From: Octopus sinensis
Lineage: Eukaryota
Direction: 5' to 3'
Assembly: GCF_006345805.1 (NCBI RefSeq)
Contig: NC_042998.1
Coordinates: 197,594,001-197,658,000, forward strand
DNA length: 64,000 nucleotides
Part shown: positions 38,073 to 61,201 of the stretch, piece after piece
Position numbering within the stretch: the first letter of the stretch is position 1
Layout of the letters: every line of letters begins with the position of its first letter
The notes under the pieces: generated by a model
The model's database searches: none
What the model was told of the DNA's origin: nothing
Seen by the model: only the letters and a program-made list of their open reading frames with translations
Program-made: the position numbers and the translations under genes

Positions 38073-38078
38073 TTTATT
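38073..38078 (-). other. Candidate polyadenylation signal (AATAAA) of the lipocalin gene
   Basis: tttatt on the plus strand, downstream of the predicted TAA at 38212. Confidence 0.4.
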
Positions 38079-38211: not shown

Positions 38212-38285
38212 TTATCTGCTTTGTCTTTCTTTCTTCCAATCAGTACTCTTCACTGTGTTACAGCTATGGTTCACCTCACTTGCAG
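38212..38285 (-). CDS. Tandem-lipocalin gene, probable terminal exon
   Basis: taatattttctag|CT, phase 1; (S)ASEVNHSCNTVKSTDWKKERQSR-stop supplies the sixth Cys of domain 2; AATAAA lies about 135 nt downstream. Confidence 0.6.
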
Positions 38286-41200
38286 CTAGAAAATATTAAA
38301 CACAACACACAATTTATTAATAATATAAATGGGCAAAAATAGAAAAAAAAAATTACAATAGGCGTAGGAGTGGCTGTGTGGTAAGTAGCTTGTTTACCAA
38401 CCACATGGTTCCGGGTTCAGTCCCACGGCGTGGCATCTTGGGCAAGTGTCTTCTGCTATAGCCTCGGGCCGACCAATGCCTTGTGAGTGGATTTGGTAGA
38501 TGGAAACTGAAAGAAGCCCGTCATATGTATGTATATATATATATGCGTGTGTGTGTTTGTGTGTCTGTGTTTGTCCCCCTAGCATTGCTTGACAACCGAT
38601 GCTGGTGTGTTTAGGTCCCCGTCACTTAGCGGTTCGGCAAAAGAGACCGATAGAATAAGTACTGGGCTTACAAAAGAATAAGTCCTGGGGTCGAGTTGCT
38701 CGATTAAAGGCGGTGCTCCAGCATGGCCGCAGTCAAATGACTGAAACAAGTAAAAGAATAAATAGTGAATACATCAAGGATTGTCTATTGTGTAAATAAC
38801 TCTTCTGAGAAATACAGTTTCCACTTCGAAAAGTTATTCACAAGATTTGGGTATTACAACAACTACTGAGCTGTTTCTTTAAAAACACAAACACACTATA
38901 CAAGTATGCATTGCAAAGTTTGTGTATTCTGTATTCTAACACAACCTCCATGTTTAGTGAGAGATGAAGACCACCTTTTGATATTAATACTGCTTCTGTC
39001 TCAGTGTTAATAACGTTTTCTCTTTGTCTGCTTGTGATTCCAGAACAGTTTTTGTGTGACCATAGCTTACATTGAGAGTCTAGTGTTTGGCATTTATGCC
39101 TACTCCTTTTCTTCATATTGAGCAAGGCTAATTCCCTGAAGATATCAGACCCCTATTTTCTTTCCTGCTTACTGAAACCTTTGGTTAGAGCAGCGGACTC
39201 GTGGTCATAGGATTGCGGTTTCGATTCCCAGACTGGGCGTTGTGAGTGTTTATTGAGCGAAAACACCTAAAAGCTCCATGAGGCTCCGGCAGGGGATGGT
39301 GGTGATCCCTGCTGTACTCTTTCACCACAACTTTCTCTCTCACTCTTACTTCCTGTTTCTGTTGTACCTGTATTTCAAGGGGCCGGCCTTGTCACTCTCT
39401 GTGTCACGCTGAATATCCCCGAGAACTACGTTAAGGGTACGCGTGTCTGTGGAGTGCTCAGCCACTTACACATTAATTTCACGAGCAGGCTGTTCCGTTG
39501 ATTCGGATCAACCGGAACCCTCATCGTTGTAACCGATGGAGTGCTTCCATCCAGTCTTAGGAATGCTTACCTTGAAGTTCCTTGCTTCTAGGTTTAGTTT
39601 TCCCCTTTCGATTCAACTACGAGAAGTAGATAATGAGCATTTAGAGACAGTCTTGGTCTGTGTGACTTTTGATGAATACAAGAGGATTGAGGACTGCACT
39701 TGAATGGACCCCTCCCCTCAAATTCATCACTGAATTCATTACTCTTTACTCTTTTTACTCTTTTACTTGTTTCAGTCATTTGACTGCGGCCATGCTGGAG
39801 CACCGCCTTTAGTCGAGCAAATCGACCCCGGGACTTATTCTTTGTAAGCCCAGTACTTATTCTATCAGTGTCTTTTGCCGAACCGCTAAGTGATGGGGAC
39901 GTAAACACACCAGCATCGGTTGTCAAGCAATGCTAGGGGAACAAACACAGACACACAAACATATACACACACATACATATATATATATATATGTATACAT
40001 ATATACGACCGGCTTCTTTCAGTTTCCATCTACCAAATCCACTCATTAGCGTTGGTCGGCCCGGGGCTATAGCAAAAGACACTTGCCCAAGATGCCACGC
40101 AGTGGGACTGAACCCGGAACCATGTGGTTGGTTAGCAAGCTACTTACCACACAGCCACTCCTGCGCCTATTGTTGACTCTCTTTACTCTCCATACATAGC
40201 TTATAGAGTCCTCACAAGCCATTCGTCTACACCTAAGCCATTCATCTACATCTATCACTTTGTCTAATTATTCATTTATTCAGAGTTGTTAAAACTTCAC
40301 TGTTTTTACTCCGAGTTCAATGTGATGATGTTTGGAATAGTGACAAGACAGTGTTTTAGTTTAACCCTTTAGTGTTCAGATTATTCTGTTAACTGTAATA
40401 CTTTTTCACTCAAATTGTTTTGAATTAATCATGCATTAGCTTACAGCTTTGAGGTTTCAATGATGTGATTGTTTATTTTTAGAATGTCAATGTAGGTTAG
40501 GTGTGAGAGGCTAGATATGGCCAGTTCAAATATAAAACATGTAGAATATTTTGGACCGGATGTGGCCAGTTTAAACACTAAAGGGTTAAAATAACTAAAT
40601 ACACACACACACACTACTATTGTGTGAAAACTTATACACAGCCACACATACCCAATATAGTGATGAGATTAACCCCTTAAGTGGTAGACTACACAGTAAT
40701 ATCAAATAACTCACTCACAAAAATTCAGCAACAGACTCACATCACTAAATGTTCATTCATTACCATCAGCATCATTATCATCAGCATTTTCTTAGTGAGT
40801 AATGTTATTATCATCTTTAAAATCAAAATCAAATTCGATGACTGGCGTCCATGTTAGCAGGGTGCAAAGAGCACCATACGAGTGTGATCACTGACAGAGC
40901 GGCTACCAGCTTCCGTGTCAGTAGCACTTAAACGGTACCATTCGACCGTGATTGTTACTAGTATTGTGTTAAAGAGCACCATCCGAGTGTGATCGTTGCT
41001 AGAGCGGCTATCTGGCCTCCGTGCTGGTGGCACGTAAAAGACAGCATTCAAGCGTGATTGTTACCAACGTCGCCTTACTGGCACCTGTGCTGGTGGCATG
41101 TGTAAAAGATTCGAGTGAGGTCGTTGCCAGTACCGCCTGGCTGGCCCAGTGCTGGTGGCACGTAAAAGTACCCACCACACTCTCGGAATAGTTGGTGTTA

Positions 41201-41418
41201 GGAAGGGCATCCAGCTGTAGAAACTCTGCCAGATCAAGATTGAAGCCTGGTGCAGCCATCTGGTTCGCCAGCCCTCAGTCAAACCGTCCAACCCATGCTA
41301 GCATGGAAAGCGGACGTTAAACAATGATGATGATGATGATGATTATTCATCATTCACTGTTGCTATCATGCATTTAAGTAGCCTTTGAAAATAATATAAA
41401 GAAGCACTGTTTACTTAC

Positions 41419-41625
41419 AAACATCCTGCACTATCTGGATTTTATCTGGATTAACACAGACTTTACTGAAGGTGGATTCAGCCATGCTGAGCATGTGTGT
41501 TGTAAGTTCCATCTTTCTGCTCATTATGTGGACCATAGGCGTATGGCATTCACCGTAGTAGTTGGTGAAAGCGCAGACGAATATTATCGTGAGATTATCA
41601 TAATCCGTATACAGGATCTTTACAA
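41419..41625 (-). CDS. Tandem-lipocalin gene, domain 2 TDY exon
   Basis: ttattctttattgcag|TT ... GTTT|gtaagt; VKILYTDYDNLTIIFVCAFTNYYGECHTPMVHIMSRKMELTTHMLSMAESTFSKVCVNPDKIQIVQDV has SCR2 (TDY), C-x8-C and SCR3 (MSR); 207 nt, phase 1 to 1. Confidence 0.9.
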
Positions 41626-41909
41626 CTGCAATAAAGAATAAATATAGATTCAGAGAGAAAGGATCCTCACTAAAGGAAATATATTTATACACACACACAC
41701 ACACACACACAAGCATATATATATATATAGATAGATTCAAATAGTCAGATGCACCAGAATTTTGTATGGTGTTATCCATATAAATCCATGGCGTGATTAT
41801 AATCAAAGATAGCAACAAGAATATCTTCGGTAATTTGGTACAATCGTTTCATGCTACACCATGAAACGATTGTACCAAATTACCGAAGATATTCTTGTTG
41901 CTTACTTTG

Positions 41910-41951
<42 letters not shown>

Positions 41952-42208
41952 GGTTTGGAGATGATGTACAGGTGTTTAATATTAGAAGAAATGAGGTACT
42001 CACAAATTCGGATGGTTTTATATTTACAGATATTTATTTGTATATTACAAATAAATATCTGTAAATATATTTCTGAGTACCTCATTTTTTCTAATATATA
42101 TATATATATACACACACAGAGAGTGTGTAATAGAGAGAGAGAGAGAAAGGAGTTCACATCAAATGTAATACAGGATATATATTGACAATATTGTGTGCAA
42201 TATCTTAC

Positions 42209-42309
42209 GTGCAGAAAATGTGTACTTTGTTGTAAAATGTCCACTGAGATCATGAGCACATTGAGGTTGTATGTCACCAACAAATGCACCACTAGTGTCT
42301 GTCTTGTTG
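42209..42309 (-). CDS. Tandem-lipocalin gene, domain 2 middle exon
   Basis: ttcttgtttctttcag|C ... GCAC|gtaaga; NKTDTSGAFVGDIQPQCAHDLSGHFTTKYTFSA; 101 nt, phase 2 to 1. Confidence 0.82.
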
Positions 42310-42829
42310 CTGAAAGAAACAAGAATAGCAAAGATCATTTAGAAGAGGAATACTGTTAGGATACAAGATTGAACATCATCATCATCATCATCATCGTTTA
42401 ACATCTGCTTTCCATGCTGGCATGGGTTGGACAGTTTGACAGGAGCTGGCCAGGCAGAAGACTGCACCAGGCTTCAGTGTCTGTTTTGGCATGGATTTTT
42501 ACAGCTGGACGCCCTTCCTAACACCAACCACCCTGCAGAGTGGACTGAGTGTATTTTTTGCAGCACCATCACAGGCGAGGTCAGTTTTGGCATGGTTTTT
42601 ACAGCTGGATGCCCTTTCAAATGCCAACCACTTTACAGTGTGGACTGGGTGCTTTTTTTATGTGGCACCAAAACTGGCTGGGTCACCAAGTAACTTGCAA
42701 GTCCTTTGAGAGAGGGAGGGGGAATTGGAGGTGATGAAAGGTTAGAGTGTGGCAGAGAGACAGAAACAACTGAATCAGAGATAGGTAAAGAGAGAGAGAT
42801 GCAGATTGCACTACACTTTAAAACAACTT

Positions 42830-43290
42830 GCATTCCTGTATTTGTATTGCCCAGTGTCCTGGGCATGGACAGATTGAAACTCCGACGTCTGGCAGCTGAC
42901 TTGGCAGACACCCATAAAATTATTAACCATCTTACAATCAATAACTCCGAGCACCTTTTCAAACTCCACCTGTCTAACACCCATGGACATGTTTACAAAG
43001 TCAGAAAACAGCGCAGCTCCCATGACTTTCAGAAAAATTTTTTCACACTAAGAGTTGCTGAAGCATGGAACAAACTGCCGGTTGTTAGTTGTCGGAGCAC
43101 TGCATCCTTCAAAACTTCCATGCTTCCTGAGATTCGCCAACACTACACCTGATTTTCTCTCCCCTCCATACACACGCAAGCATGTATCTGACTCATACAC
43201 TGTTCGCTTTCCAGACATTTGTACATTACTGCATATACTTTATATGCACTTTTGACAAGTTGTGGTGCACCTGAGCACTGTATACAATAA
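42830..43290 (+). mobile_element. CR1-type LINE 3' fragment
   Basis: LKLRRLAADL...THGHVYKVRKQRSSHDFQKNFFTLRVAEAWNKLP is the CR1 ORF2 C-terminus. A shorter copy lies at 28960-29255. Confidence 0.8.
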
Positions 43291-44037
43291 TTTCTTTATT
43301 ATAATGTCATAGGATGGCTGGTATGGTGTAGTGTATTAGAATGGCTTGCACAATGTAAAAGGGCAGCTGGTACAGTGCATGGCCACAGCTGCTGTGATAC
43401 CCTGTATAAGGAGACTGGTGTGATATAGTGTATCACAACTAATATAGTACAGGAATTAGGAAAGCTCATGGAGTATTGTGTGGTGTAATATAATGCAATA
43501 GTAATATTGTGTTGTCTAATATAGCAGCCATACTATTAATGTATTTCTAACCAATGTCCATATCTCTGTCCCATGCGAAATGCTTAGCGGTATTTCGTCT
43601 GTCGTTACGTTCTGAGTTCAAATTCCGCCGAGGTCAACTTTACCTTTCATCCTTTCGGGGTCAATAAATAAAGTACCAATTTCGCACTGGGTGGGTGGGG
43701 GGTCGATGTAATCGACATAATCCCTTTGTCTGTCCTTGTTTGTCCCCTCTATGTTTAGCCCCTTGTGGGTAGTAAAGAAATAGGTATTTTGTCTGCCGTT
43801 ACGTTCTGAGTTCAAATTCCGCCGAGGTCAACTTTACCTTTCATCCTTTCGGGGTCGATAAATAAAGTACCAATTTCGCACTGGCGGGGGGGGGGGGGGC
43901 GATGTAATCGACTTAATCCCTTTGTCTGTCCTTGTTTGTCCCCTCTATGTTTAGCCCCTTGTGGGCAATAAAAAAAAAATACATATCTCTGTCCCATGGT
44001 AACAACACTTGTCTTACTATTGTAATGTAATACTTAC

Positions 44038-44174
44038 TTAGCATATTGATATCCAAGTTTTAAATGTCCATCTGTGTCCTCATAGAATTGAACTCTGTGT
44101 GTATGGTTTGCACCCCTCTTTCCTATTTGGTCAGGGATATCAGAATGCGCTACTTCATACCATGTTCCAAGAAG
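44038..44174 (-). CDS. Tandem-lipocalin gene, domain 2 GxWY exon
   Basis: caatcatttcag|CTT ... GCTAA|gtaagt; LLGTWYEVAHSDIPDQIGKRGANHTHRVQFYEDTDGHLKLGYQYA; 137 nt, phase 0 to 2. Confidence 0.9.
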
Positions 44175-44339
44175 CTGAAATGATTGAAGCAAATGTTGGC
44201 TATTAGCTGTAATAATTCAGGAAAATAAAGAATGCCATTTATCAATTTAGAAATGAAAGATTAGCAATTTAGGAAATTCAATTTCCTGTGTAATTATTTC
44301 CTTTATAGACACAAGAGTCTCTGCTTTTATAAGGTATAA

Positions 44340-44727
44340 AAGGAGGCGCAATGGCCCAGTGGTTAGGGCAGCGGACTCGCAGTCATAGGATCGCGGTTTC
44401 GATTCCCAGACCGGGCGTTGTGAGTGTTTATTGAGCGAAAACACCTAAAGCTCCACGAGGCTCTGGCAGGGGATGGTGGTGATCCCTGCTGTACTCTTTC
44501 ACCACAACTTTCTCTCACTCTTACTTCCTGTTTCTGTTGTACCTGTATTTCAAAGGGCTGGCCTTGTCACTCTCTGTGTCACGCTGAATATCTCTGAGAA
44601 CTACTTTAAGGGTACACGTGTCTGTGGAGTGCTCAGCCACTTACACGTTAATTTCACGAGTAGGCTGTTCCGTTGATTCAGATCAACCGGAACCCTCATT
44701 GTCGTAACTGATGGAGTGCTTCCATCA
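44340..44727 (+). mobile_element. tRNA(Arg)-derived SINE family C
   Basis: ggcccagtggttagggcagcggactcgc...gtttcgattcc head. Copies at about 300-675 (-), 39178-39550 (+) and 53635-54005 (-), and a relative at 44785-44990. Confidence 0.88.
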
Positions 44728-45425
44728 TCATAAGGTATAAAGCAGGTGGGATTTACTCAAGTAACCCTACTGAAATTGTGGAGGCACATGGCCTAGTGAT
44801 TCGAGCGGCGGACTCGCGGTCGAGGGATCATGGATTCGAATCTCAGACTGGGTGATGTGTGTGTTTATGAGCGAAACACCTAAGCTCCACGCGGCTCCGG
44901 CAGAAGGTAATGGTGAACTTTTGCTGACTCTTTTGCCACAATTTTCTCTCACTCTTTCCTCCTGCATCTTGCAGCTCACCAGCGTCCCATCCAGGTGAGG
45001 AACCTATACGCCAAGGAAACTGGGAAACCGGCCCTTATGAGCCAGGAGTGGCTTGAGAAGGAACAAACAAAAAAAAAAACTGAAATTGTAGCTATAAAAG
45101 TGGTAATCATTATAGTAGTATCGGTGCAAGTAACAAAGGTGTTCATGATAATAGTAGGAGTAGAATTAGTACTGGTTGTAGTAGTAGTAGTAGTTGTACT
45201 AGCACTGATGATTATATTAGTTGATTTAGTAATGGTATTGGTAATAGTAGAAGTATTAGTGACAATACTGGTGGTATTAGTGTTAGTAATAGTAGAAACT
45301 GGTATTAGTAATAGTGGTAACAGGTTGTAGTTTTGATGCTAATTGTAGTATTTATGGTGGGAATGTTAGTATTGATGACCAAAGAAGTAGTGGGCTGGCA
45401 GAATTATTAAGGCATTGAAATAAAT

Positions 45426-46147
45426 GAGGCATTTAGTAACAGACTGTTGAAAGCGCCAAAACTTAAAAGCCGAAAAAAGCACAGTTAAAGTTTTGCAACC
45501 TTCAGAATGCAATATCTTGGCAAGAAATGAAGTTAGGAAGCTAGTTTTGGTCTTAAAATGACCATGAAGACCTCCTCTAGTCATTCGACCTGTGTAAAAT
45601 TAATTATTATGTATGCGTCTGAAAGATGAAACAGTGACTGCATCTGTCTCATTTTATAGAATATCCTGGTACTATGAAACGGTGTACCAAATTACATATT
45701 TTAGCCACAATACCTAGAAAAAACATACAGAGACCCCACCCAAAGGTATTGTTTGTGCTTTAATATACCAAGGTAAGAATCTTTAAGTGGTAGGTAAAAC
45801 AAGATAATAAGACAATAGCCCATTATCGTTATGATGGTAACAAGGAATATTAACAAAATGAACCTTAACACCTTGAAAAACGATACAGGGACCACACCAA
45901 AGTTATTGATTGAGCATGTGGTGTGCTTACAATGGTGTGTTACTAAACTCTCTGGTCTGAGTTTGGGTGAGCGAGCATCGTGTTTGTAGCGTTGAGGTAT
46001 AATAATTTTTTTCAGCTGGATTTCAACCTTATTGCAAGCCTCATTGGTTCTTCCTCCCAACTTTTTCGGATTCTAGACGTTGAGACAAAGAAATTGAGAT
46101 ACTAACCTCGAAAATGTTGTGCTTATGACACTGTTACTAAATGCCTC
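45426..46147. mobile_element. Non-autonomous TIR element, Sola2-like
   Basis: Perfect 17-bp TIR GAGGCATTTAGTAACAG with a 4-bp TSD AAAT. GRG termini with 4-bp TSDs are typical of Sola2. Confidence 0.55.
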
Positions 46148-47705
46148 AAATGCTTTGCAGAATTTCTTCAGATTGTTCCGTGTTCCAGTCATGCTGAAGT
46201 CATCTTTTCTTTTCATCCTTTCAGGGTTGATAAAATAAAGTACCAGTCATGTACTGGAGTCAATGTGATCAACTAACCCCTTATTATTATTATTATGGGA
46301 TTTTCTTCTTCTTTCAAATTTGCTTCCATTTCTTGCCGAGTGTCTTCCCGACCCCTAGGGCAAAGAAACTCATAGTATACATTGGTAGGCCATTAGACTA
46401 AACTCACTAGTTCGTTCATTTTTTTTTTTTTTTTGATAGAAATAAAGTTAAATTAAAATACATGGGTAGTAATAGTTCTCACATCGACAATGCTCTTCTC
46501 AATACATGTGATGTACCAGTTAAGACAATCTTTTGCACTTCTTAATCTTCGACTTAATCTGTTTGTCTGTCCTTGTTTGTCCCCTCTATGTTTAGCCCCT
46601 TGTGGGTAGTAAAGAAATAGGTATTTCATCTGCCGCAACATTCTGAGTTCAAATTCCGCCGAGGTCGACTTTGCCTTTCATCCTTTCGGGGTCGATTAAA
46701 TAAGTACCAGTTACACACTGGGGTCGATGTAATCGACTTAATCCGTTTGTCTGTCCTTGTTTGTCCTCTCTGTGTTTAGCCCCTTGTGGGTAGTAAAGAC
46801 TCTGTGTTTAGCTCCTTGTGGGTGGTAAAGAAATAGGTAGGAGTCTGAGGAGTACTCGGTCACTTGCATGTTAATTTCATGAGTAGGCTTTTCTGTTGAC
46901 CAGATCAACTGGAACCCTTGTCGTTGTAACTGATGGAGGCCCAGTTTTCAGTTCTCTCTGTCCCCAATCAATTTATCATCTTAGTCTCTCTAGTTCCTGC
47001 CACGTTGTTGTATTTTCACTTTTTCATCTAATTACTCTTTTACTCTTTTACTTGTTTCAGTCATTTGACTACGGCCATGCTGGAGCACCGCCTTTAGTCG
47101 AGCAAATCGATCCCGGGACTTATTCTTTGTAAGCCCAGTACTTATTCTATCGGTCTCTTTTGCCGAACCGCTAAGTGACGGGGACATAAACACACCAGCA
47201 TCGGTTGTCAAGCAATGTTAGGGGAATAAACACAGACACACAAACATATACACACACATACATATATATATATACATATATACGACTGGCTTCTTTCAGT
47301 TTCCGTCTACCAAATCGACTCACAAGGCTTTGGTCAGCCCGAGGCTATAGTAGAAGACACTTGCCCAAGATGCCACGCAGTGGGACTGAACCCGGAACCA
47401 TGTGGTTGGTAAGCAAGCTACTTACCACACAGCCACTCTTATAATACATCAACATTGCCAGTGTAAAATTTCTCCAAACAGATATAATTAGGGAACCTTT
47501 ATGTGTGGTCACTTGACATGCTAGAAAGAGCAGTAAATTTTTCTTGAAATTACACCTGATCAGAAAAGGAAACATGCCCAGAAAAATGCAATTTGGTGCC
47601 TGGGAAAAAAAAAAAAAAATTTGATGGTCATGGCTGTAGTGTCTTGGACTACATTCCTACTTAGAGCTGAGTTAAAGCTAAAGAATATCAACAACAACAA
47701 CAAAC

Positions 47706-47797
47706 CTTTGACTGGTTGTAGTTTTCAATACCAGGAATATTTTCCACAGAGCATGTAGTATGTGTGTTGTTCGTCAATTTTGTAGGTTCTGTGAAAT
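47706..47797 (-). CDS. Tandem-lipocalin gene, linker plus domain 2 N-terminal Cys exon
   Basis: tatccttaattctag|AT ... AAG|gtttgt; (N)FTEPTKLTNNTHTTCSVENIPGIENYNQSK resembles RBP4 CRVSSFRVKENFDKAR (recalled); 92 nt, phase 1 to 0, joining the domains in frame. Confidence 0.78.
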
Positions 47798-47951
47798 CTA
47801 GAATTAAGGATATACAAAACTATATTATAGTGAAGATCAAATAGTGTGTGTGTTTAGTTGGCAAAGAAAAAAAACAAAACAAACCATCCTCAAGTATTAC
47901 AATGTCTGTTTAAACACACATTTTCACATGAAGAATTGTGCCAAACAATTA

Positions 47952-49709
47952 CGAGGTCTGATCAACAAGTATCTGGACTGGTGCTATAAAAACAAAACTA
48001 CAGCACATATCAATTTGGCATTTAATCTCCTTCAAACTAGTCCCCTTCAGAAGCCACACACTTAATCCAGTACCGTTTCCAATGATGGAAGCATTCCTGG
48101 AACTCGTTTTCTGAGATAATCAGCAGCCACCTCACTGCATTTACTTTGATTTCCTCGACATCCTGAAACCATCTTCCTTTCAAGTGGGATTTGATTTTTG
48201 GAAAGAGGAAAAAGTCGCAAGGGCAAGATTAAGGGAAAATGGTGGCTGTTGGACTTGGGAAATGCTCTGCCAAAAACTGCTGCACAAGCTGTGCTGAACA
48301 TGCAGGCGCGTTGTCATGATGAAATTGTCACTCACTGGAGACATGCAATTGTGGACTTTTCTGACAAATAGCATCTGCTATAGCCCCGGGCCGACCAATG
48401 CCTTGTGAGTGGATTTGGTAGACGGAAACTGAAAGAAGCCTGTCGTATATATGTATATATGTATGTGTGTGTGTGTTTGTCCCCCTAGCATTGCTTAACA
48501 ACCGATGCTGGTGTGTTTACGCCCCCGTTACTTAGCGGTTCGGCAAAAGAGACCGCTAGAATAAGTACTGGGCTTACAAAGAATAAGTCCCGGGGTCTAT
48601 TTGCTCGACTAAAGGCGGTGCTCCAGCATGGCCACAGTCAAATGACTGAAACAAGTAAAAGAGTAAAGAGAGTATGCAAATGCCACAAAATGTCATAGTA
48701 GTACTCCTTGTTTATTGTCTGACCTGGTGGAGAATACTCTTGATGAACAATCCCCTTGTGGTCGAAGAAAAGGGTCAACAGTGTCTTCAAATTACTTCAA
48801 ATCATTTGCGCTTTCTTCAATCTCTGAGAAATTGAGGTCTTCCACTGTGAAGACTGAGCCTTTGTTTCGGGGTCATAGCCATAGACCCATGATTCATCAC
48901 CTGTTATGACCGTTTTCAAAAAGTTTACATCGTTCTCAACACAATCAAGGAGATCTTATACAACTAAAACCGGAGTATCTTTTTGATCAGCTGAAAGCAG
49001 TTTTGGCACAATCTTAGCAGACACATGTCTCGTACCCAAATCTTCAGTGATAATGGACTGAACTGAACTGTAACTAATCTGCACATCCTCATCTTCATCA
49101 TCGTTTAACGTCCGCTTTCCATGCTAGCATGGGTTGGACGGTTTGACTGTGGACTGGCGAACCAGATGGCTGTACCAGGCTTCAATCTTGATCTGGCAGA
49201 GTTTCTACAGCTGGATGCCCTTCCTAACGCCAACCACTGGTAACTCATGGATGGCAATTCAATGATTTCTCCTCACAGCTGCACATACATCAGCAATGTT
49301 TCTTTCAGTTCTGCTGGTTGCTGGTCTCTCAGAACATTCATCACTATTGACATTTTTTCAGCCATCTTGGAAACGTCTGAACCTCTCATACACCTGTGTG
49401 TGGCTCATACACCCCTCTCCATACACTTTCTGTTACTTTGTGTAGGTCTCTGAGCAGGTTTCACCAAGCTTTTGGCAAAATTTGATGCAGATTCTCTGCT
49501 CAACTTTTTCTGTCATGGTCAATGGGATGATCACACACTACACATGTTCCTTCCAAGCACTGCCGTAAACAGCGGAAGTGAGATAGAACGTTAAAACTTA
49601 GTTGCATGCACAGCAGAGTTTAAGGTCAATCTGTGCCAAATGGCTTCATTTTGTGTGCCTTAGCTTCATTACTATGGCAACAGTTTGGATATTTATTGAT
49701 CAGACCACG
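47952..49709 (-). mobile_element. Decayed mariner (Tc1/mariner) transposon with transposase pseudogene and nested SINEs
   Basis: TA-flanked imperfect TIRs cgaggtctgatcaacaagtatc / cgtggtctgatcaataaatatc. Minus-strand remnants MTEKVEQRICIKFCQKLGETCSETY (HTH) and CDFFLFPKIKSHLKGRWFQDVEEIK...ECFHHWKRYWIKCVASEG carry stops. SINEs are inserted near 48380-48670 and 49090-49240. Confidence 0.9.
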
Positions 49710-49989: not shown

Positions 49990-50213
49990 CAGGGGTGGGC
50001 AAACTACAGCCCGCAGATGTATGCGGCCCGCCATAGGTTTTCATGCGGCCCACCGAGAGCTTTTATGAATCCCAACTTCTATGCAGATACTTCGTAACTG
50101 TTTCAGTTGTACAGTAATTCACAATATTTTCACTTGATTTTTATAAATGAGGCCCGCCAAGGTTCCAAAGACGCACTGTGCGGCCCGCGATCAAAAAAGT
50201 TTGCCCACCCCTG
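49990..50213. mobile_element. hAT (Charlie-type) MITE
   Basis: TIR caggggtgggcaaact / agtttgcccacccctg with an exact 8-bp TSD GTATAGAG. Confidence 0.88.
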
Positions 50214-50396
50214 GTATAGAGGGATAAAGACTGGAAGAAGAAAGATAAAGAGCAATAGAGACAGATGAGGATAAAAACAAAGAAAAAGACGGAAGGAAAG
50301 AGAGATAGAGTAAGATTGTGAGAAATTAAGTTAGGACAGCTTGGGATGAGGGTAGATTGAAGAAACATTTCTGAAAAATGTACCAATTTTACTTAC

Positions 50397-50612
50397 TCAG
50401 TGATGGAAATGTTACTGTATTCAGTTGAGAAATATTCAAGCATAGGAATGGCTGAAAGTTTTTTAGTTTCTCCAGGGTACCGTTTGTCATTTGTTTTTGT
50501 CTGGAGTATACCATGAGTGAAACACTATTTGTATCACACTTTCCGGTACTTTCTTCTGGGCATGAGTATATGAATTGAGTGTCTTCATCAATGTAGGCCA
50601 CGTGATGTTCAT
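50397..50612 (-). CDS. Tandem-lipocalin gene, domain 1 C-terminal exon
   Basis: ttcttttcctccctag|AT ... CTGA|gtaagt; (Y)EHHVAYIDEDTQFIYSCPEESTGKCDTNSVSLMVYSRQKQMTNGTLEKLKNFQPFLCLNISQLNTVTFPSL has the YSC-x7-C loop and SCR3 (YSR); 216 nt, phase 1 to 1. Confidence 0.85.
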
Positions 50613-51633
50613 CTAGGGAGGAAAAGAATTATGTGTAATAATTTTATGGTAACATATCTCTTTAGTAATAATGGTATGCTTAATTAGGATGGTGTGTTAA
50701 TTGTGGCACACAAGTCATCATCATCATCATCGTCGTCGTTTAGCGTCCGCTTTCCATGCTAGCATGGGTTGGACGGTTCAACTGGGGTCTGGGAAGCCAG
50801 AAGGCTGCACCAGGCCCAGTCTGATCTGGCAATGTTTCTACGGCTGGATGCCCTTCCTAACGCCAACCACTCCATGAGTGTAGTGGGTGCTTTTTATGTG
50901 CCACCGGCACAGGTGCCAGACGAGGCTGGCAAACGGCCACGATTGGATAGCGCTTTTACATGCCACCGGCATGGGGGCCAGACGAGGCTGGCAACGGTCA
51001 CGAATGGATGGTGCTTTTTACGTGCCACCGGCACAAGGCCAAGCTCAATTTGCCTCGTATTCATGTGAGTCTGTTTATAAATGTCCTTCTGTGACATTTT
51101 GGCTGAGTGTCTTGCATTACAGCCTTCGGTTGACCCAAGAAGCTCTGAGAATGAAATTAAGCAAATAGAAACTATATAAAAGAACATCAGATGGATTATA
51201 TTTGCCTATGAGTTTGAATGGATTTGTTTAGCAGTGTGTGGTCTATGGATGTGATTTAAGGAGGTCTTTGACCTTAGAGAAACTCAACGTCTTTGTTGCT
51301 ACCCCTGACAGCAAAATCCTTTTAGTTGGGGTTTATTTTTCTCATTCTTCAACCAATCCTGGGAGATCCTGCAAAAGATCATGGATTTACTCTTCTTCCT
51401 TTACCAATTCATCTATGCCTGATTCTCTTCAGAATAAAGCAGTTTTATATTTCTAAGATGAGGAATTAGTGGCATTTCGTTCATCTTTATGTTCTGAGTT
51501 CAAATTCTGCTGAGGTTGACTTTGCCTTTCATCCTTTCGGGGTCGTTAAAATAAGTACCAATTGAGCATTGGGGATCGATATAACCAACTTAGCTCCTCC
51601 CCAAAATTTGCTAGTCTTGTGTCAAAATTTAGA

Positions 51634-51657
51634 ATTATTATTATTACTACTATTATT

Positions 51658-51724
<67 letters not shown>

Positions 51725-51799
51725 TCATCATCATCATCATCATCATTATTATTATTATTATTATTATTGTTATTATTATTACTGTTATTATTATTATTG

Positions 51800-51830
<31 letters not shown>

Positions 51831-51931
51831 CATTATTATTATTATTACTGTTGTTATTATTATTATTATTATTATTATATTATTATTATTATTATTATTA
51901 TTGTTATTATTATCATTATTATTATTATTAC

Positions 51932-51979
<48 letters not shown>

Positions 51980-51985
51980 TGTTAA

Positions 51986-52034
<49 letters not shown>

Positions 52035-52092
52035 GTTATTATTATTGTTATTATTATTATTATTATTATTATTGTTATTATTATTATTATTG
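51634..52092. repeat. Compound trinucleotide microsatellite (ATT/GTT/GTC/ATC/ATT)
   Basis: Direct reading; explains the poly-I/L/Y ORFs. Confidence 0.97.
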
Positions 52093-54890
52093 CCTTTGCA
52101 CAGCTTCTAACGCTGTAGATGTACTACAGTGTCAGCTGTTCACGACCAGTGAACTAAGGTAACACTTCTTATTTTTCAAGCACCTTCTGGAGTATTTGAG
52201 CGATTCCAAGCAGTGCTGTTTTCTACAAGTGCTCCACCCTTATTGCAGCCCCTATTTGTTCCATGTATTTCTCAAGACTTTTGCTCACTGTTCCCAGGGC
52301 TCCGACAAATACTATGTATCAATTGGAGTGGTGTTCTCATCTTGATTGTTGCTTTCATTATGTATCAGCTGTATACATTACAACCTTCTTCAGGTGTCTT
52401 GTGATTCACCTTTAGTGCTTTGCCTGTTGTTTGTTGTTTGCACCCTTTGCAAACAACACTAGGACACTGAGATAGTGTCTAAAGTCCTTCTGGTGACGTT
52501 GATCGCCTGGGGCTAAAAGCATCAGTAACACCCCCACCCCCACCCCCCCAGAGGCTAGCCACATTCAGATGGCTGATACCCCTTACGTTGTCGACCGGTT
52601 ACTGTTTATATCTCGTTCAGAGATTTATTATTGTTTTTATTGATTGTTCTCCCTTAAATTGGTTACAATACTACTACTAAGCATTAGCATGTATATGGAC
52701 TATTTTAGAAAAAATAACTTTTATATAAATAAACAAAATATTATATAAATATAAATAAACTAAATACTAAAGCAAAGGCGGCGAGCTGGCAGAACCATTA
52801 GCACGCTGGGCGAAATGCGTAGCCGTATTTCGTCTACTGTTACGTTCCGTGTTCAAATTCCGCCGAGGTCGACTTTGCCTTTCATCCTTTCGGGGTCGAT
52901 AAATTAAGTACCAGTTACGCACTGGAGTCGATATAATCGACTTAAATTCGTTTGTCTGTCCTTGTTTGTCCCCTCTATGTTTAGCCCCTTGTGGGTAGTA
53001 AAGAAACATAAATACTAAAGCAAAGGACCACTGATGAGGTCACAGGAGTGTGACGAAAGACCTCTGGCCGAAATAAGATTAAGATTACAAAATAAATAAC
53101 GCTGAAGCAAAGTAACACCAAATATATAGTGCGTGTGTTTTTATTGGCTAAACTGGCAAAATGACCATTCCTAAGTACAACAATAAACTAAATAATATTA
53201 TATATTTAATCTATTTGTGAGCAGGAATAGGATTGATGGCTACCAAGAGTCAGCAGACATTTGGAAGGAATGACAACAGAGCAGTGAAAGTTAGCAGCCC
53301 TATGTGCATCTTTTGAAAGGAAGAACCAACAGAAATGTATTTCCAATTTTAGGAAATATCCTCCAAGGATTCCTGAATGGGTTGGTGATGAGAATCTTAT
53401 TTGGTGGGCCAAAAGATATTAATGTTTGGTAACAGATTTATAGTAATGAAAATGAGATGTATTTGTAACAAAGTCTGTAAAAACTGGTATGGCCTGAAGA
53501 TTTAATAGGACAAGAGGAAATGTGCATAGATGGTAGTGAGATTCAGGGGAAGCCAAGCCTGAATTCATCTGCAGTTACTGGATACATAAGCCCAAACTTA
53601 TGCAGAGTAATAGAACATCATTGAATGATATATAGGAGCACTGTCGGTTCCGACGACGAGGGTTCCGGTTGATCCGATCAACGGAACAGCCTGCTCGTGG
53701 AATTAACGTGCATGTGGCTGAGCAATCCACAGACACGTGTACCCTTAACGTAGTTCTCGGGGATATTCAGCGCGACACAGAGTGTGACAAAGCTGGCCCT
53801 TTGAAATACAGGTACAACAGAAACAGGAAGAAAGAGTGAGAGAAAGTTGTGGTGAAAGAGTACAGCAGGGATCACCACCATCCACTGCAGGAGCCTTGTG
53901 AAGCTTTAGGTGTTTTCGCTCAATAAACACTCACAACGCCCGGTCTGGGAATCGAAACCGCGAACCTATGACCGCGAGTCCGCTGGCCTAACCACTGGGC
54001 CATTCTCCACCATTGAATGATATGGCCCTTAGCTATCAAAGGAAAGAGTAGCTCTAGTTTAATGTAAATGTTGATTCCATCTTGGAGGCAGTAGTTATGG
54101 GTGATGCTGATTGATGTCTCCAGATGGTTGCCACCTCAATCATTAGTCTTGAAACCGAGAAGTTCATGCTAAATAAGAAGACTACATCAAAATTTCCCTA
54201 CAGCATAAATGACAGAGCAAGTGAGATATACCAGTTCAAGCAAGAGCTGAAGAACTTGAGGTGGCAGCTGAGTGTGTACTTATGGGGTCAAATACAGTCA
54301 TCATCATTGCCTAACGTCTGCTTTCCATGCTAGCATGGGTTGGACGATTTTGACTGAGGGCTGGCGAACCAAATGGCTGCACCAGGCTCCAATCTTGATC
54401 TGGCAATGTTTCTACAGCTGGATGCCCTTCCTAATGCCAACCACTCCGAGAGTGTAGTGGGTGCTTTTTACATGCCACCGACATGGGGCCAGTCAGGCGG
54501 TACTGGCAATGACCTCGCTCGAATCTTTTTACACATGCCACCGGCACAGGTGCAAGTAAGGCGACATTGGTAACGATCATGCTCGAATGGTGCCCTTTTA
54601 CGTGCCATGGCACGGGGGCCAGTCAGGCAGTACTGGCAATGACCTCGCTTGAATCTTTTTACACATGCCACTGGCACAGGTGCCAGTAAGACGACGTTGG
54701 TCACGATCATGCTCGAATGGTGACCTTTTATGTGCCATGGCACGGGGGCCAGTCAGGCAGTACTGGCAATGACCTCGCTCGAATCTTTTTACACATGCCA
54801 CCGGCACAGGTGCCAGTAAGGCGACACTAGTACACAAGCACTCGTGCATGCACACGCGCGCACACACGCACACACGCACACACACACACA

Positions 54891-54921
<31 letters not shown>

Positions 54922-56702
54922 CAGAACAAAAAGCAGAAAAACCATAAATTTCACAAAGGTCATAGTTTGTGGTCGACAGCTGTTTCTTTGGCATCAAAAC
55001 AACATTATTTATGCATTTAAGGTATGTCAATAAAACACCTTTTTAACAAAAATTATGAAGTAATTTATGCTTTCCCTCCTATTATTCTAAATATGTTACT
55101 CTCAACAATCGTTAAAGCCACTTCTAATACGTGCAAGTTTGTTCTACAAGGGATTACTTGGCGTTTAACAATGGTTCATTTATTGAGATCTTCATTACTG
55201 TAAATATACTTTTCAATGTTTATATGTGAATTCGCTCTCTCTTGATATATATATATATATATGTATACATATATACATACCAGCTCTACCTGCAGAGCTC
55301 AGATCACCTGTTTATTATTCATCAATCACATTCTCTCTCTTGCCAGCTCACATCACCATTCTGTACTGCTGGTCCCACCCATACACCCATTTCTACAAAT
55401 ATCCATCATTTGCTCTCTTCTGCTGTTCTCTGCAACCACCATCTCTTTCTTTCTATCCTGGTATTAGAGACTCCTTGCCATAACTTCCTTTCTTTCATCA
55501 CCAGAGGGTTAGTACTCTCTTCCATTTCCAATCTACTTCTGTGATGTCAGCCCAACTAACTGTCTCCCCAACCATAGTCTTGTTTCAATCTTTTTTCCAC
55601 AGCACCACCTTGACTGGCTTCTGTGTTGGTGGCACATGACCTGGTGTGCTTGAGGAGACCTACTGAGTCTAGTACATCAACATCAAAATAAATATCAAAT
55701 GAAAATTGTAGTTGTGATCCCTGTGCCAGCAGCACGTAAAAAGCACCATCCGAATGTGGCTGATGCCAGCCTCCCCTGATACCTGTGCCGGTGGCACGTA
55801 AAAAGCACCCACTACAATCATGGAGTGGTTGGCGTTAGGAAGGGCATCCAGCTGTAGAAACCCTGCCAAATCAAGATTGGAGCTTGGTGCAGCCTCCTGG
55901 CTTCCCAGACCCCAGTCGAACCGTCCAACCCATGCTAGCATGGAAAACGGATGTTAAACGATGATGATGATGATGAGTTCACCTTCTACAACCAGCCTCT
56001 CTCTCACTTTCCTTCTGCTAGTCATCCCTGTTACCTTGATCCAATGGAGACAACACACAGTAGTAAGGATCTGTTGTGTCTTGCTGAGTAGAAGGTAATA
56101 TCAATATTGCTGGTGCCATGAGGAAAAGCACTCGGCACACTCAGTAAAGGGGTTGATGAATGAGTGGAGATAATATAAGCTTGAGAGGACTCCTTAGTTC
56201 TGTTTCCATTAAGGACAAGACAACCTCTTTTGTTGGTGGCATATTATTTCCACATTGTACATTTCCGAGCGTGGCCGTTCGCCAGCCTCGTCTGGCACCT
56301 GTGTCGGTGGCACATAAAAATCACCCACTACACTCACGGAGTGGTTGGCGTTAGGAAGGGCATCCAGCTGTAGAAACTCTGCTGGATATGACTGGCCTGG
56401 TGCAGCCTCCAGGCTTCCCAGACCCCAGTTAAACCGTCCAACCCATGCTAGCATGGAAAGCGGACGTTAAACGATGATGATGATGATGATGATGTACACT
56501 CTGTGAAGTGGTTGTTGCTAGAAAGTGCATTTGGCCATAAAGAGCATGCTAATTAAAACATGAACGAGACATATAGGAAGAGGTCAGTGACTCTAAATAA
56601 GAATCGACTTGGACTGTGACAAACCATCCGACCCATGACATCATGGAAAGTGGACATAAAATGACAACGAAGACATTGATAATGATGACGATGTTGTTGA
56701 TG

Positions 56703-56750
<48 letters not shown>

Positions 56751-57816
56751 TGCATGCATGCATGCACGTACGTGTGCATGCGGGTTTCTTTTTTGTTTAT
56801 CATCATCATCATCGTCGTCGTTTAACGTCCGTTTTCCATGCTAGCATGGGTTGGACGGTTCAACCTGGGATCTGGGAAGCCAGGAGGCTGCACCAGGCTC
56901 CAGTCTGATCTGGCAGTATTTCTACAGCTGGATGCCCTTCCTAACGCCAACCACTCCATGAGTGTAGTGGGTGCTTTTTATGTGCCACCCGCACAGGGGC
57001 CAGTCAAAATGCGTTGGCATTTATTCTTACTATGTGTTTGAAAATGCTTGTTTTGAAGGCCAAGGTTAATGTAATTGAAAATTATATTAAATTTAACTCT
57101 ACATAATAATGGTGGTGCTCCAGAATGACCGCAGATGCATGGCTGAAACAAGTAAAAGAGTATAAAAGAATAATCAGTTATATTGCATGTCCCTAACTGA
57201 TGTTTGTAACTTGCTTATTCTGTTACTTGTCATATTCTTCTTCCCCCTCCTCTACTACCATTACCTATTTCTTTTACTACCCACAAGGGGCCAAACAAGG
57301 ACAAACGGATTAAGTCGATTATATTGACCCCAGTGCGTAACTAGTACTTGATTTATTGACTCCGAAAGGATGAAAGGCAAAGTCGACCTCGGCGGAATCT
57401 GAACTCAGAACATAGCTGCAGATGAAATACAGCTACACATTTCACCCGGCGCGCTAACGTTTCTGCAGACGTGTTGATCTGATAGGGAGCTACCACGTGC
57501 AAATATTGACACAATAGATGATGACTGCATAAACTGACACAATATGCAGATGTTGACTGTACAGATAGACACAATGTGTAGATATTGACCATATAGAAGG
57601 ACATAGTGTGTAGGATTTGAGTAGAGAGATGTAGTGTGTAGATGTTTAGGGAGATTGATAGACACAACTGTAAATGATGACTGAACAAGCAGGCATTTAT
57701 GTAGATGGAGAGTGTCAGACAATTCGGTTAATCACTCAGAAACTCACATGCCACTTATTTTTTATGAAATTCCTGAAGCTTCATATATTTCACAATAATT
57801 CAGGTTAATGACTTAC

Positions 57817-57929
57817 ATATTGTACTGAAATTTTTTCCTGGAAGGTTCAGGTATGTTTCCATGAATTTTGCCTTTCCTGGACAGATTTGGGTATAGCTGC
57901 TTCTCCATTTCCATTGACAAGTATTGTCC
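57817..57929 (-). CDS. Tandem-lipocalin gene, domain 1 middle exon
   Basis: tttcattcttcatcag|G ... ATAT|gtaagt; DNTCQWKWRSSYTQICPGKAKFMETYLNLPGKNFSTI resembles RBP4 [23 protein letters not shown] (recalled); 113 nt, phase 2 to 1. Confidence 0.82.
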
Positions 57930-60113
57930 CTGATGAAGAATGAAATACATTTAAGTACAGAGCCCATGAATGAAATGGTTGCATTACAGACAATGTCTTT
58001 CAGTGAATCCTAATTTGTATTGTTGACCAGTTATTGTGAAGTATTATTGTGCATTTGTATTTGTCTGTTTATTCTTCTATGTTCTTCATTGTATAAGTTA
58101 TACATATCAGTGCAGTGGACAGTCACAGAGAAAGATGTATACCGTAAATCCTCGAGTATAGTCCGCCCTTGAGTATAATACACAGGGGATTTTTAGGGGG
58201 CTGTACCTCAGAAAAACCTAAACCTTGTGTATAATACGCACCCCTTCTCTAACTTGAATCAAGGAGGTCTATATACACTCCAACTTAATCACACATTCCT
58301 GTTTGATGCCTATAACACACAATGTCACCATTTTGAATTCCACTCCACACAGAGCAAAAAACGTTTCTTAAACCCTTCAGCATTTAAACTGGCCAAATCC
58401 GACCCAACCCATTCTACCTGTTTTATGTTTTAGCTAGATCTGGTCACCCACACCTATTCTATAATGTCATTTTAAAAATGAACAATCACATCATCAAAAT
58501 CTTGCAGCTACCGTAAATCCTCGAGTACAGTCCGCCCTTGAGTATAATACGCTGGGGATTTTTAGGGGGTTGTACCTCTGAAAAACTTAAACCTTGTGTA
58601 TAATACACACCCCTTCTATAACTTGAGTCAAAGAGGTCTATATAACGTCCTTGGTTTGTGAAACTGTATACGGTAACGTCCTTTATTATTATTGTATATA
58701 TAACATAATGCAAACGTGTAGCTTTTTTGTGCATTTTGTTCGCAGAAAATAAAGAAATAACAGTAATAACGTTTAATAAATGTTGCTTACTGCAAGTTAT
58801 GGATGATTCTTTTATGACTTCATTGCTTTCAGGCTTAGCTTAAGGTATTTTCGTGCCCGACATCACAAAAGTCATAGAGAAAGATGTATACTGTAAATCC
58901 TTGAGTATAGTCTTCCCTTGAGTATAATATGCAGGGGATTTTTAGGGGGCTGTATCTCAGAAAAACCTAAACCTTGTGTATAATACGCACTCCTTCTATA
59001 ACTTGAGTCAAGAAAGTCTATATAACGTCCTTGGTTTGTGAAAATGTATACGGTAACGTCCTTTATTATTATTGTATATATAACATAATGCAAACGTGTA
59101 GCTTTTTTGTGCATTTTGTTCGCAGAAAATAAAGAAATAACAGTAATAACGTTTAATAAATGTTGCTTATTGCAAGTTATGGATGATTCTTTTATGACTT
59201 CATTGCTTTCAGGCTTAGCTTAAGGTATTTTTGCGCCCAACATCACAAAATGCGTCTGAATAAACATTGCCAGACAGCAAATAGAGACTCGGACATTGCT
59301 CAGAAAATAATTTTCATTTTTAACCTCGTATATAGTACGCACTAGGGATTTTGACCTTTAAATTTTTTGGGGAAAAAAATGCTGATTATACTCGAGGATT
59401 TACGGCAGTTCATAACTTGTCCTCTGTATCTCATTGCATCTGTGGCTAAGACTCTTAACTTTGAAGTGCACTTAATTATGAACTAGGTACTGCAGTATGT
59501 TAACAACTTATTGCTTCAAACAACATCAATAAAGATTTATTAACTTCCAGCAACAAGTTCAATTTCAGCTTGGGGCAGACAGAGACTACTTTTCTCCTAT
59601 TCATAACACTTAATGCAGGTAAATTGAAAACAGTTTGCAAACTTCTGGATTATTGTGATTTGGAAATTCTTCGCTTTATTTTATTCTACAATGGTGTTCG
59701 TTTGCTGATCATGCGAATAAGTAAGTGTTTATGTTATAGTAGTTATGGTGCTAGATTGTAGTGCATCGAATAGGATGGACAGCAAAAAGAGACAGAAGAA
59801 GAGAGCAATTTGTGGTATTGCAGTAGAATACATTTTTTACACTAGTGCAACAGTAAGCTTATAAATGTAAATATGATGCAGTGACATTATGTTATTGTTG
59901 TCGGTCTTAAAGTCTTATATTGCGATGTTGAACATTCCAATATTGTTTGGGTGTAGCAATGTTAGAGTTGCAGTGTGGTTAAAGATGTTAGAAATGTTAG
60001 AACTGTAGTGTTATTAGTGGTGCAATTTAGATAGTATGCAGTGGTATCATTGGTGGTGTTATTAATACAGAAGTGTTTCTAGTTAAAAGTGTCGGTCTGA
60101 AATGGTATTAATA

Positions 60114-60530
60114 TAGGCGCAGGAGTGGCTGTGTGGTAAGTAGCTTGCTTACCAACCACATGGTTCCGGGTTCAGTCCCACTGCGTGGCATCTTGGGCAA
60201 GTGTCTTCTGCTATAGCCCAGGGCTGACCAATGCCTTGTGAGTGGATTTGGTAGACAGAAACTGAAAGAAGCCTGTCGTATATATGTATATATATATATA
60301 TATGTGTGTGTGTGTATGTGTTTGTGTGTCTGTGTTTGTTCCCCTAGCATTGCTTGACAACCGATGCTGGTGTGTTTACGTCCCCGTCACTTAGCGGTTC
60401 GGCAAAAGAGACTGATAGAATAAGTACTGGGCTTAGAAAGAATGAGCCCGGGGTCGATTTGCTCGACTAAAAGGCGGTGCTCCAGCATGGCCACAGTCAA
60501 ATGACTGAAACAAGTAAAAGAGTAAAAGAG
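60114..60530 (+). mobile_element. tRNA-derived SINE family A (central (TA)n, AAAGAGT tail)
   Basis: aggcgcaggagtggctgtgtggtaag...gttccgggttcagtccc (A/B boxes) ... gtaaaagagtaaaagag. Copies at about 8785-9180, 11500-11908, 19873-20290, 33695-34127, 36622-37020, 38358-38760, 39740-40170, 47035-47440 and 48380-48670. Confidence 0.9.
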
Positions 60531-61094
60531 TGATACTGTTGTGGCAATCATAGAATTATTGATGTTGCAAAGGTGTTTATATTGTAGTGTAGTAGTTGTA
60601 ATAGTATTAGTGTGCAATAGTGTCGGTATTGTAGTGCTGTTAATTCTACATTGATGTTAGTGTGCAGCATTATCAGTGGCGCTGTGGTGTTAATGCACAT
60701 TGGTATTAATGTACATGTAAACAGATGTTGGTGTCAAAATGATATAGTGTGCAAGTGTGACATGTGTAATCCAATATTGAGCACAAATACATGCGTATAT
60801 TTTGGTGTGGTGAAAATCTATATTGCATACATAATGCATTAGTGCAGGTGGTTTTAGTGACTGCACGCACAATAGTATCAATAGTCGTGTAAGCTGTGTA
60901 GTACATAAGAGGTGCAATCTTTTAAATGTGTCCACAAGGATCATCTTTGTGGTTGCATGGATGTACACAGAATGTTATGATGACATCTGGACAATTTATA
61001 AGTTACCATAGCAACGTATGGGATAGATGAGGGAAAACGAAGCAGTTAGCATGGATATATAATGACAACAGATGAATGATAAAAAGGTTGTTAC

Positions 61095-61201
61095 TTTGGT
61101 TGGCACCGGTCAATGATCAAAGTGTCTGGTAGTGTGGTGATGTTCACAACGGATCCTGGAATACTATTCATAGCAGCAACGACATACCAAATACCATCCA
61201 A
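61095..61201 (-). CDS. Tandem-lipocalin gene, domain 1 GxWY exon
   Basis: Acceptor ttttctcttctaaatctgtcacctag|TTG, donor CCAAA|gtaaca; LDGIWYVVAAMNSIPGSVVNITTLPDTLIIDRCQP contains lipocalin SCR1 (GxWY); 107 nt, phase 0 to 2. Confidence 0.8.

Follow-up and report, generated by a model that had tools for sequence, protein, structure and literature searches.

Which gene do eight short exons, scattered over some 23 kb of DNA in Octopus sinensis, belong to, and what kind of protein do they encode? The DNA analyzed here, referred to as the window throughout, is a stretch of 64,000 nucleotides from contig NC_042998.1. An earlier reading made from the letters alone (the sequence-only reading) had proposed that its minus strand holds a hidden gene for a two-domain lipocalin resembling RBP4. 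The window very probably contains the 3′ part of the gene for a secreted protein of 735 amino acids (aa) composed of four lipocalin-type units, a member of a mollusc 'polycalin-like' family. This gene, LOC115224175, is not hidden, as it is present in RefSeq and its orthologues are annotated in three other octopods. It is ordinary as a gene, already annotated in both RefSeq and UniProt yet uncharacterized, and no paper mentioning it or the loci of its relatives was found in the searched library.

The exon chain could be rebuilt from the sequence. Eight minus-strand exons, flanked internally by AG and GT, add up to 1047 nt (107+113+216+92+137+101+207+74) and splice into an open frame of 348 codons with TAA at its end. 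The coordinates, lengths, splice flanks, open frame, and stop codon that had been proposed were all reproduced. Most donors read GTAAG, polypyrimidine tracts are mostly present, and the intron phase series is (0),2,1,1,0,2,1,1. In the RefSeq protein XP_029650806.1 (LOC115224175 isoform X1 of O. sinensis, 735 aa), residues 388-735 match the spliced product without a single difference (100% identity). The product is 89% identical to XP_052821518.1 of O. bimaculoides (LOC106871838, 735 aa) and 57% identical to GAB1598998.1 of Argonauta hians (727 aa), and it differs from CAI9716937.1 of O. vulgaris at 8 positions across the 348-aa stretch, which assigns the window to O. sinensis. Because the product is fully identical to an independent RefSeq protein and is matched at these levels in O. 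bimaculoides and Argonauta, the chain is far beyond chance. The two domains encoded in the window are the third and fourth units of the full protein (domains 1 and 2 of the sequence-only reading) and are called units 3 and 4 below. The features of the gene in the window are as follows, in the order of transcription.

61095 to 61201, minus strand: exon of 107 nt (phase 0 to 2) for the GxW strand of unit 3, LDGIWYVV...RCQP (XP_029650806.1 residues 388-423), with AG/GT flanks, an open frame, and 100% tblastn identity to XP_029650806.1.
57817 to 57929, minus strand: exon of 113 nt (phase 2 to 1) for the middle of unit 3 (DNTCQWKWRSSYTQICPGKAKF...), matched by tblastn with XP_029650806.1.
50397 to 50612, minus strand: exon of 216 nt (phase 1 to 1) for the C-terminal half of unit 3, with YSC-x7-C, YSR, and FLCLNIS.
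47706 to 47797, minus strand: linker exon of 92 nt (phase 1 to 0), encoding TTCSVENIPGIENYNQSK, in which unit 3 ends and unit 4 starts with its N-terminal segment and first Cys.
44038 to 44174, minus strand: exon of 137 nt (phase 0 to 2) with the GxW motif of unit 4 (LLGTWYEVAHSDIP...), which lies within the Pfam PF00061 match and is matched by tblastn with XP_029650806.1.
42209 to 42309, minus strand: exon of 101 nt (phase 2 to 1) for the middle of unit 4 (NKTDTSGAFVGDIQPQC...), matched by tblastn with XP_029650806.1.
41419 to 41625, minus strand: exon of 207 nt (phase 1 to 1) for the C-terminal half of unit 4 (TDYDN, C-x8-C, MSR, KVC), gapless against RBP4 TDYDTYAVQYSC...C...FSR.
38212 to 38285, minus strand: last coding exon segment of 74 nt, encoding a hydrophilic C-terminus and ending in the TAA stop (SASEVNHSCNTVKSTDWKKERQSR*).
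38073 to 38078, minus strand: AATAAA polyadenylation signal, 133 nt past the stop codon.

The AATAAA signal probably marks the end of the gene, in agreement with the annotated end, which lies 4.6 kb from a convergent neighbour. An alternative exon of 101 nt (43293-43193) was ruled out, as it has no match in XP_029650806.1. The motifs named by the sequence-only reading are all present in the spliced product: GIWY and GTWY, the short Cys loops CPEESTGKC (C-x7-C) and CAFTNYYGEC (C-x8-C), YSR and MSR, and six Cys in unit 4. The annotated span of LOC115224175 is 103.5 kb (GCA_006345805.1), of which about 23 kb at the 3′ end lie in the window. Residues 1-387 of XP_029650806.1 do not map to the window by tblastn, so that the window has the last eight coding exons only. 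Repeats account for 49% of the DNA of the window and overlap none of these exons. In addition, no further paralogous exons were found when the window was searched by tblastn with the 348-aa product, and an Rfam scan of the window gave no match.

The relatives of this protein are not easily reached. A word-indexed homologue search returned none, either with the 348-aa product or with unit 4 alone as the query. It took an exhaustive phmmer search, in which the query was the uninterrupted frame containing the 216-nt exon (window 50392-50628, minus strand), to find the orthologues. This search matched the 727-aa Argonauta protein at 55% identity; with that protein as the query, the two 735-aa octopus proteins were obtained. 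Eight of the 13 phmmer hits were discarded as artefacts, one being a simple tandem repeat and seven being bacterial-type repetitive proteins. The UniProt name of the O. bimaculoides orthologue is 'Lipocalin/cytosolic fatty-acid binding domain-containing protein'.

Whether the two units of the window belong to a single gene turns on the junction between positions 50397 and 47797. XP_029650806.1 contains exactly the residues of this junction (SLNFTEP), and the equivalent stretch is kept in four octopod proteins (O. sinensis, O. vulgaris, O. bimaculoides, and Argonauta hians). The alternative is that the locus comprises two or more separate, tandem, single-domain lipocalin genes and that the fused model is an annotation artefact. 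Tandem lipocalin clusters are indeed common in vertebrates (PMC8420045), and readthrough past the 216-nt exon meets a stop after two codons (SLSK*). However, this stop is incidental, as it lies inside the splice donor itself (GTAAGTAA). The linker exon, for its part, contains neither an ATG nor a signal peptide, and some 25 nt ahead of its acceptor a TAG closes the frame. No credible signal-peptide exon was found in the 2.6-kb intron that precedes it. The candidates for such an exon, both there and upstream of 61201, turned out to be merely repeat- or microsatellite-derived frames, and the real upstream exons of LOC115224175 lie outside the window.

A divergent orthologue of the three unit 3 exons (43-60% identity) is present on a 35-kb contig, ctg82894l, of a metagenome assembly (ENA ERZ21867824), the source of which is presumably another cephalopod.

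Contig ctg82894l, 5281-5390, 7503-7612, and 9990-10208: homologues of the three unit 3 exons, of 110, 110, and 219 nt, with both splice sites at the corresponding places and the phases unchanged.

The acceptor position and phase of the 107-nt exon are thus kept in this contig, and the 113-nt exon has a 110-nt homologue in the same phase. The donor after the third exon is also conserved, but the immediate stop is absent. Together with the conservation of the junction across four independently annotated octopod proteins, and with the occurrence of multi-unit relatives in a mussel and two snails (described below), these observations make the separate-genes alternative very unlikely, to the point of being scarcely credible. 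A single gene with consecutive lipocalin-type domains, as had been proposed, is borne out by XP_029650806.1 and by the junction that it uses.

The complete protein is larger than the two domains described by the sequence-only reading. The consecutive arrangement stands, but the number of units is four, as the signature C-x7/8-C-x8/10-SR occurs four times in XP_029650806.1 (at residues 122, 293, 478, and 660). A GxW(Y) motif lies ahead of three of these signatures, and GWF lies ahead of the second (unit 2). Residues 1-387 supply the signal peptide and the further domains that had been anticipated upstream of 61201. The N-terminus (MSFGIVLLFVTVVSSLVTA) is a signal peptide by inspection, whereas the C-terminus (KSTDWKKERQSR) is hydrophilic and has no anchor signal. 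The protein contains 21 Cys and 21 N-x-S/T sequons and, because of the latter, is probably heavily N-glycosylated. The same four-unit architecture is kept in O. bimaculoides (88-89% identity) and in Argonauta hians (56-57%). An isoform X2 (XP_036356566.1) differs solely by SAN>RTI at residues 235-237, in unit 2 and upstream of the window, which suggests the use of an alternative splice site or of an alternative micro-exon. Unit 3 has an extra C-x6-C pair (C420, C427).

In the window, each unit is spread over four exons, which end in phases 0, 2, 1, and 1, respectively: a short linker exon that connects it to the preceding unit, a GxW exon, a middle exon, and a large exon. The large exon encodes the conserved C-x7/8-C hairpin, the SR motif, and then a helix. 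The linker exon specifies the mature N-terminal segment of the unit, which in a stand-alone lipocalin is part of the signal-peptide exon, before the GxW exon. The phases 0,2,1,1 recur in both window units and match the generic lipocalin series 0,2,1,1(,1) (PMC3184775).

Multi-unit relatives are not confined to octopods. The same phmmer search matched XP_052091175.1 of the mussel Mytilus californianus (912 aa) and two snail proteins, KAL8608206.1 of Nucella lapillus (2332 aa) and KAK7459419.1 of Batillaria attramentaria (2221 aa, partial). These proteins, annotated merely as uncharacterized or hypothetical, pass Pfam Lipocalin and share with the octopus protein a tandem unit with the same Cys hairpin, although the number of units is five in the mussel and at least 6-8 in the two snails, in contrast to four in the octopus. 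Immunoglobulin domains occur beside the lipocalin units in the snail proteins, and the Nucella model starts with an RNase_T exonuclease domain, probably through the fusion of gene models.

The mussel protein also bears on the age of the units. It is collinear with the octopus protein, with about 670 residues aligned. For each octopus unit, the score is 27-30 bits with the closest mussel unit and at most 14 bits with any sister unit in the octopus; the best mussel partner is unit 1 for unit 1, unit 3 for units 2 and 3, and units 4 and 5 for unit 4. Because each octopus unit is closer to a mussel unit than to its own neighbours, and because the two proteins align collinearly, the multi-unit state is older than the divergence of cephalopods and bivalves. 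The duplications are ancient, and the recent whole-domain duplication that had been suggested for the octopus gene does not hold.

The lipocalin nature of the units is evident to different degrees. Unit 4 passes Pfam PF00061 (about 27-29 bits against a cut-off of 23), retains all three conserved regions (GTWY, TDYD, and MSR), and, as a single sequence, matches solved lipocalins in PDB, with crustacyanin first (E=3e-4) and sandercyanin, ApoD, and RBP4 also present. Unit 1 has weak Triabin and Lipocalin_2 matches in Pfam. With regard to unit 3, GIWY and YSR are kept while the TDY region is degenerate (YIDED). Its similarity to unit 4 is slight (BLASTP E=10), and hhalign gives an alignment that is collinear and full-length but weak (E=0.0018, probability 15%). 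The Pfam check on the two lipocalin domains of the sequence-only reading is therefore split: unit 4 passes, whereas its domain 1, unit 3, has no Pfam or PDB hit.

The units could be joined through their mollusc relatives. A profile made from 17 mussel and snail units, and from no octopod sequences, scores 49.9, 65.4, 41.4, and 84.9 bits against octopus units 1-4, respectively, while the best of 500 shuffles per unit reaches no more than 11.1 bits. In an alignment of 29 units, the GxW glycine and both hairpin Cys are invariant and the SR arginine is nearly so, and the resulting family profile matches solved lipocalins with a best E of 1e-16. Because of these mollusc-profile scores and the match of the family profile to solved lipocalins, all four units are homologous lipocalin-type domains. 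For unit 3, this homology is shown only indirectly, via the mollusc-unit profile.

Several points weigh against a protein of four lipocalin-type units. The four-unit gene models are computational annotations, though independent in four species. When the whole protein was modelled by AlphaFold2 from a three-sequence alignment, the mean pLDDT was 32.5, a confidence insufficient for a fold search, although the order strand-strand-strand-helix-strand recurs from unit to unit in the model. The number of Cys (21) is odd, and the N-terminal Cys is missing from units 1 and 2; therefore, the units cannot all share one disulfide scheme, and at least one Cys must be free or engaged in a bond between units or chains. 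Furthermore, neither Pfam nor PDB returned any hit for units 2 and 3, and unit 3 still had no PDB hit when it was used as a three-species profile.

The last point could also mean that units 2 and 3 are degenerate lipocalin relics, which serve as spacers or interaction modules and leave ligand binding to unit 4 and perhaps to unit 1. The replacement of GxWY by GWF in unit 2 agrees with such decay, as do the loss of TDY and the extra Cys pair in unit 3. However, both units reach 41-65 bits with the independent mollusc-unit profile, and neither has lost the GxW glycine, the Cys hairpin, or the SR arginine, residues that vary little or not at all over the 29 units. Unit 3 is also 57% conserved between Octopus and Argonauta, with all of its Cys retained. 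The relic explanation is thus considered rather unlikely, and four lipocalin-type units of common origin are preferred.

The resemblance to RBP4 claimed by the sequence-only reading requires a closer look. The third disulfide of RBP4 (C120-C129) has been reviewed as a distinct feature of that protein (PMC8420045). In an alignment of unit 4 with human RBP4 by hidden Markov model, four of its six Cys fall on C4, C120, C129, and C160. The segment TDYDNLTIIFVC-x8-C-x8-SR runs without a gap along RBP4 TDYDTYAVQYSC(120)-x8-C(129)-x8-SR, and the Cys that follows the helix is the one placed on C160. The fourth Cys of unit 4 was counted on the sequence as 12 residues later than RBP4 C70. The consensus Cys of the 29-unit family fall on five RBP4 positions (C4, C70, C120, C129, and C160), and the top PDB matches of the family profile are RBP4 (chicken and human, 58-64 bits), against 50 bits for ApoD.

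These findings raise the possibility that the mollusc units are true relatives of RBP4 and purpurin, of a type that predates the vertebrates, and that molluscs use the protein as their extracellular carrier of retinoids. Such a result would be of interest, as annelids have been reported to lack RBP4 and the closest mollusc sequence so far is ApoD-like (PMC5821490; bioRxiv 10.64898/2025.12.01.691671). However, when Cys was replaced by X in the 29 units, RBP4 (38.5 bits) dropped below NGAL (53.9), sandercyanin (47.2), and ApoD (46.3), with the caveat that the masking also altered the alignment. This drop shows that RBP4 owed its lead entirely to the cysteines. Unit 4 on its own ranks crustacyanin first, and as a three-species profile it matches RBP4, crustacyanin, and ApoD about equally (28.5, 27.3, and 26.0 bits). 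Moreover, the intron phases, which the sequence-only reading had taken as an RBP4/purpurin character, point the wrong way, because the 0,2,1,1(,1) series is reported as a generic lipocalin pattern: phases 0,2,1,1,1 are found in ApoM, Ptgds, and an amphioxus lipocalin and are 'different from vertebrate Rbp4 genes' (PMC3184775).

The term RBP4-like can accordingly be kept for the positions of the Cys (four in unit 4 and five in the consensus) but not for the remaining sequence, which is nearer to NGAL and ApoD once the Cys are masked. Judged by these alignments, the correct description is an RBP4-like cysteine framework in an otherwise generic lipocalin sequence. The framework reflects either shared ancestry or convergence, and it could be the latter. 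It is quite improbable that the mollusc units are RBP4 kin and serve as a retinoid carrier. Equally improbable is the related proposal that the complete three-disulfide set taken as the hallmark of vertebrate RBP4, with its C120-C129-type hairpin, is present in each unit of this old mollusc multi-barrel family and was inherited, so that an RBP4-type lipocalin predates the vertebrates. If the framework were inherited, these proteins would become candidate extracellular carriers of retinoids or carotenoids, of the kind that lophotrochozoans reportedly do not have.

What does the protein do, if it is the four-unit member of a mollusc family, as preferred here? From an architecture and a family membership that can be read directly, we infer that the units fold as barrels with paired disulfides and that each barrel would bind a small hydrophobic ligand. 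Because it has a signal peptide, many sequons, no anchor, and four lipocalin-type units, the protein would serve outside the cell as a multivalent carrier or scavenger, with carotenoids, retinoids, bilins, sterols, or fatty acids among the possible ligands. The balance for such a carrier role is about even, whereas retinoids specifically would be an improbable ligand. As far as the searched library goes, what is new is the family: its secreted proteins, seen in cephalopods, a bivalve, and gastropods, have between 4 and at least 8 lipocalin units in tandem, the duplication of which is older than the separation of these classes. No paper on mollusc multi-lipocalin proteins was found in the searched library. 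The family adds a protostome data point for lipocalin evolution and provides testable candidates for extracellular carriers of hydrophobic ligands.

The remainder of the window contains part of a convergent gene and a variety of repeats.

15927-16073, 18749-18898, 21253-21441, and 31470-31811, plus strand: legumain-type (Peptidase_C13) exons, converging on the lipocalin gene.
48040-48228 (minus strand), 61806-61997 (minus strand), and 62757-63056 (plus strand): frames resembling transposon remnants, recognized by eye, in introns and upstream of exon 1.
37824-37916, 41008-41320, 49105-49265, 54373-54743, 55669-55957, 56209-56470, and 56822-57041, both orientations: examples of a short interspersed repeat with dozens of copies.
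51745-52091: (ATT)116 microsatellite in the intron that precedes the 216-nt exon.
58509-59250: tandem duplicate of a 380-bp unit, 94% identical, in the intron that follows the 107-nt exon.

The first two legumain-type frames match positions 1-35 and 32-56 of Pfam PF01650, and a Peptidase_C13 gene is annotated on the opposite strand 4.6 kb downstream of LOC115224175, as its neighbour. By eye, one of the transposon-like frames resembles the C-terminal end of a mariner-type transposase (FQECFHHWKRYWIKCVASEGD) and two resemble non-LTR retrotransposon ORF2 tails (…EKIEKYQDL…); a Pfam scan of the frames at 48040-48228 and 61806-61997 returned no significant match. The short interspersed repeat, with the frames …HASMGWT… and …LDALPNANHS…, is the source of much of the 49% self-similarity of the window and matches no tRNA or other RNA family in Rfam. 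It was also reported that a 'fatty-acid binding protein/lipocalin' gene is a flanking marker of the octopod Doppelganger-toxin (SF1) cluster (bioRxiv 10.64898/2026.02.02.703354); this marker may or may not be LOC115224175.

Compared with known systems, unit 4 and the family consensus share with RBP4 and purpurin an N-terminal Cys 20 residues before the Trp, the YSC-x8-C-x8-SR arrangement, and a Cys after the helix. On the other hand, RBP4 is a single-domain protein, its overall similarity to the units does not exceed that of NGAL or ApoD after Cys masking, and its intron pattern is reported to be different. ApoD, crustacyanin, and the insect bilin-binding lipocalins resemble the octopus protein in their generic intron phases, and the unit 4 profile matches this group about as well as it matches RBP4. 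However, they are single-domain proteins without the C-x7/8-C hairpin, and they have a strand B Cys soon after GxW, which the octopus units lack.

In terms of overall layout, the closest counterparts are the lepidopteran polycalins (such as the Bombyx chlorophyllide-binding protein and those of Helicoverpa and Plutella), in which many tandem lipocalin-like domains likewise lie in one polypeptide. Lepidopteran polycalins are membrane-associated in the midgut, whereas the C-terminus of the octopus protein is hydrophilic and devoid of an anchor signal. The name 'polycalin' was coined for multi-lipocalin polypeptides, and the insect ones have about 15 lipocalin-like domains (PMC10145054), in contrast to the four units of the octopus protein. 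The two are likened by a shared lipocalin fold and a tandem layout, and they may have had independent origins. With four hairpin-SR units in a single chain, the octopus protein is a polypeptide of several lipocalin-like domains, as the name polycalin denotes.

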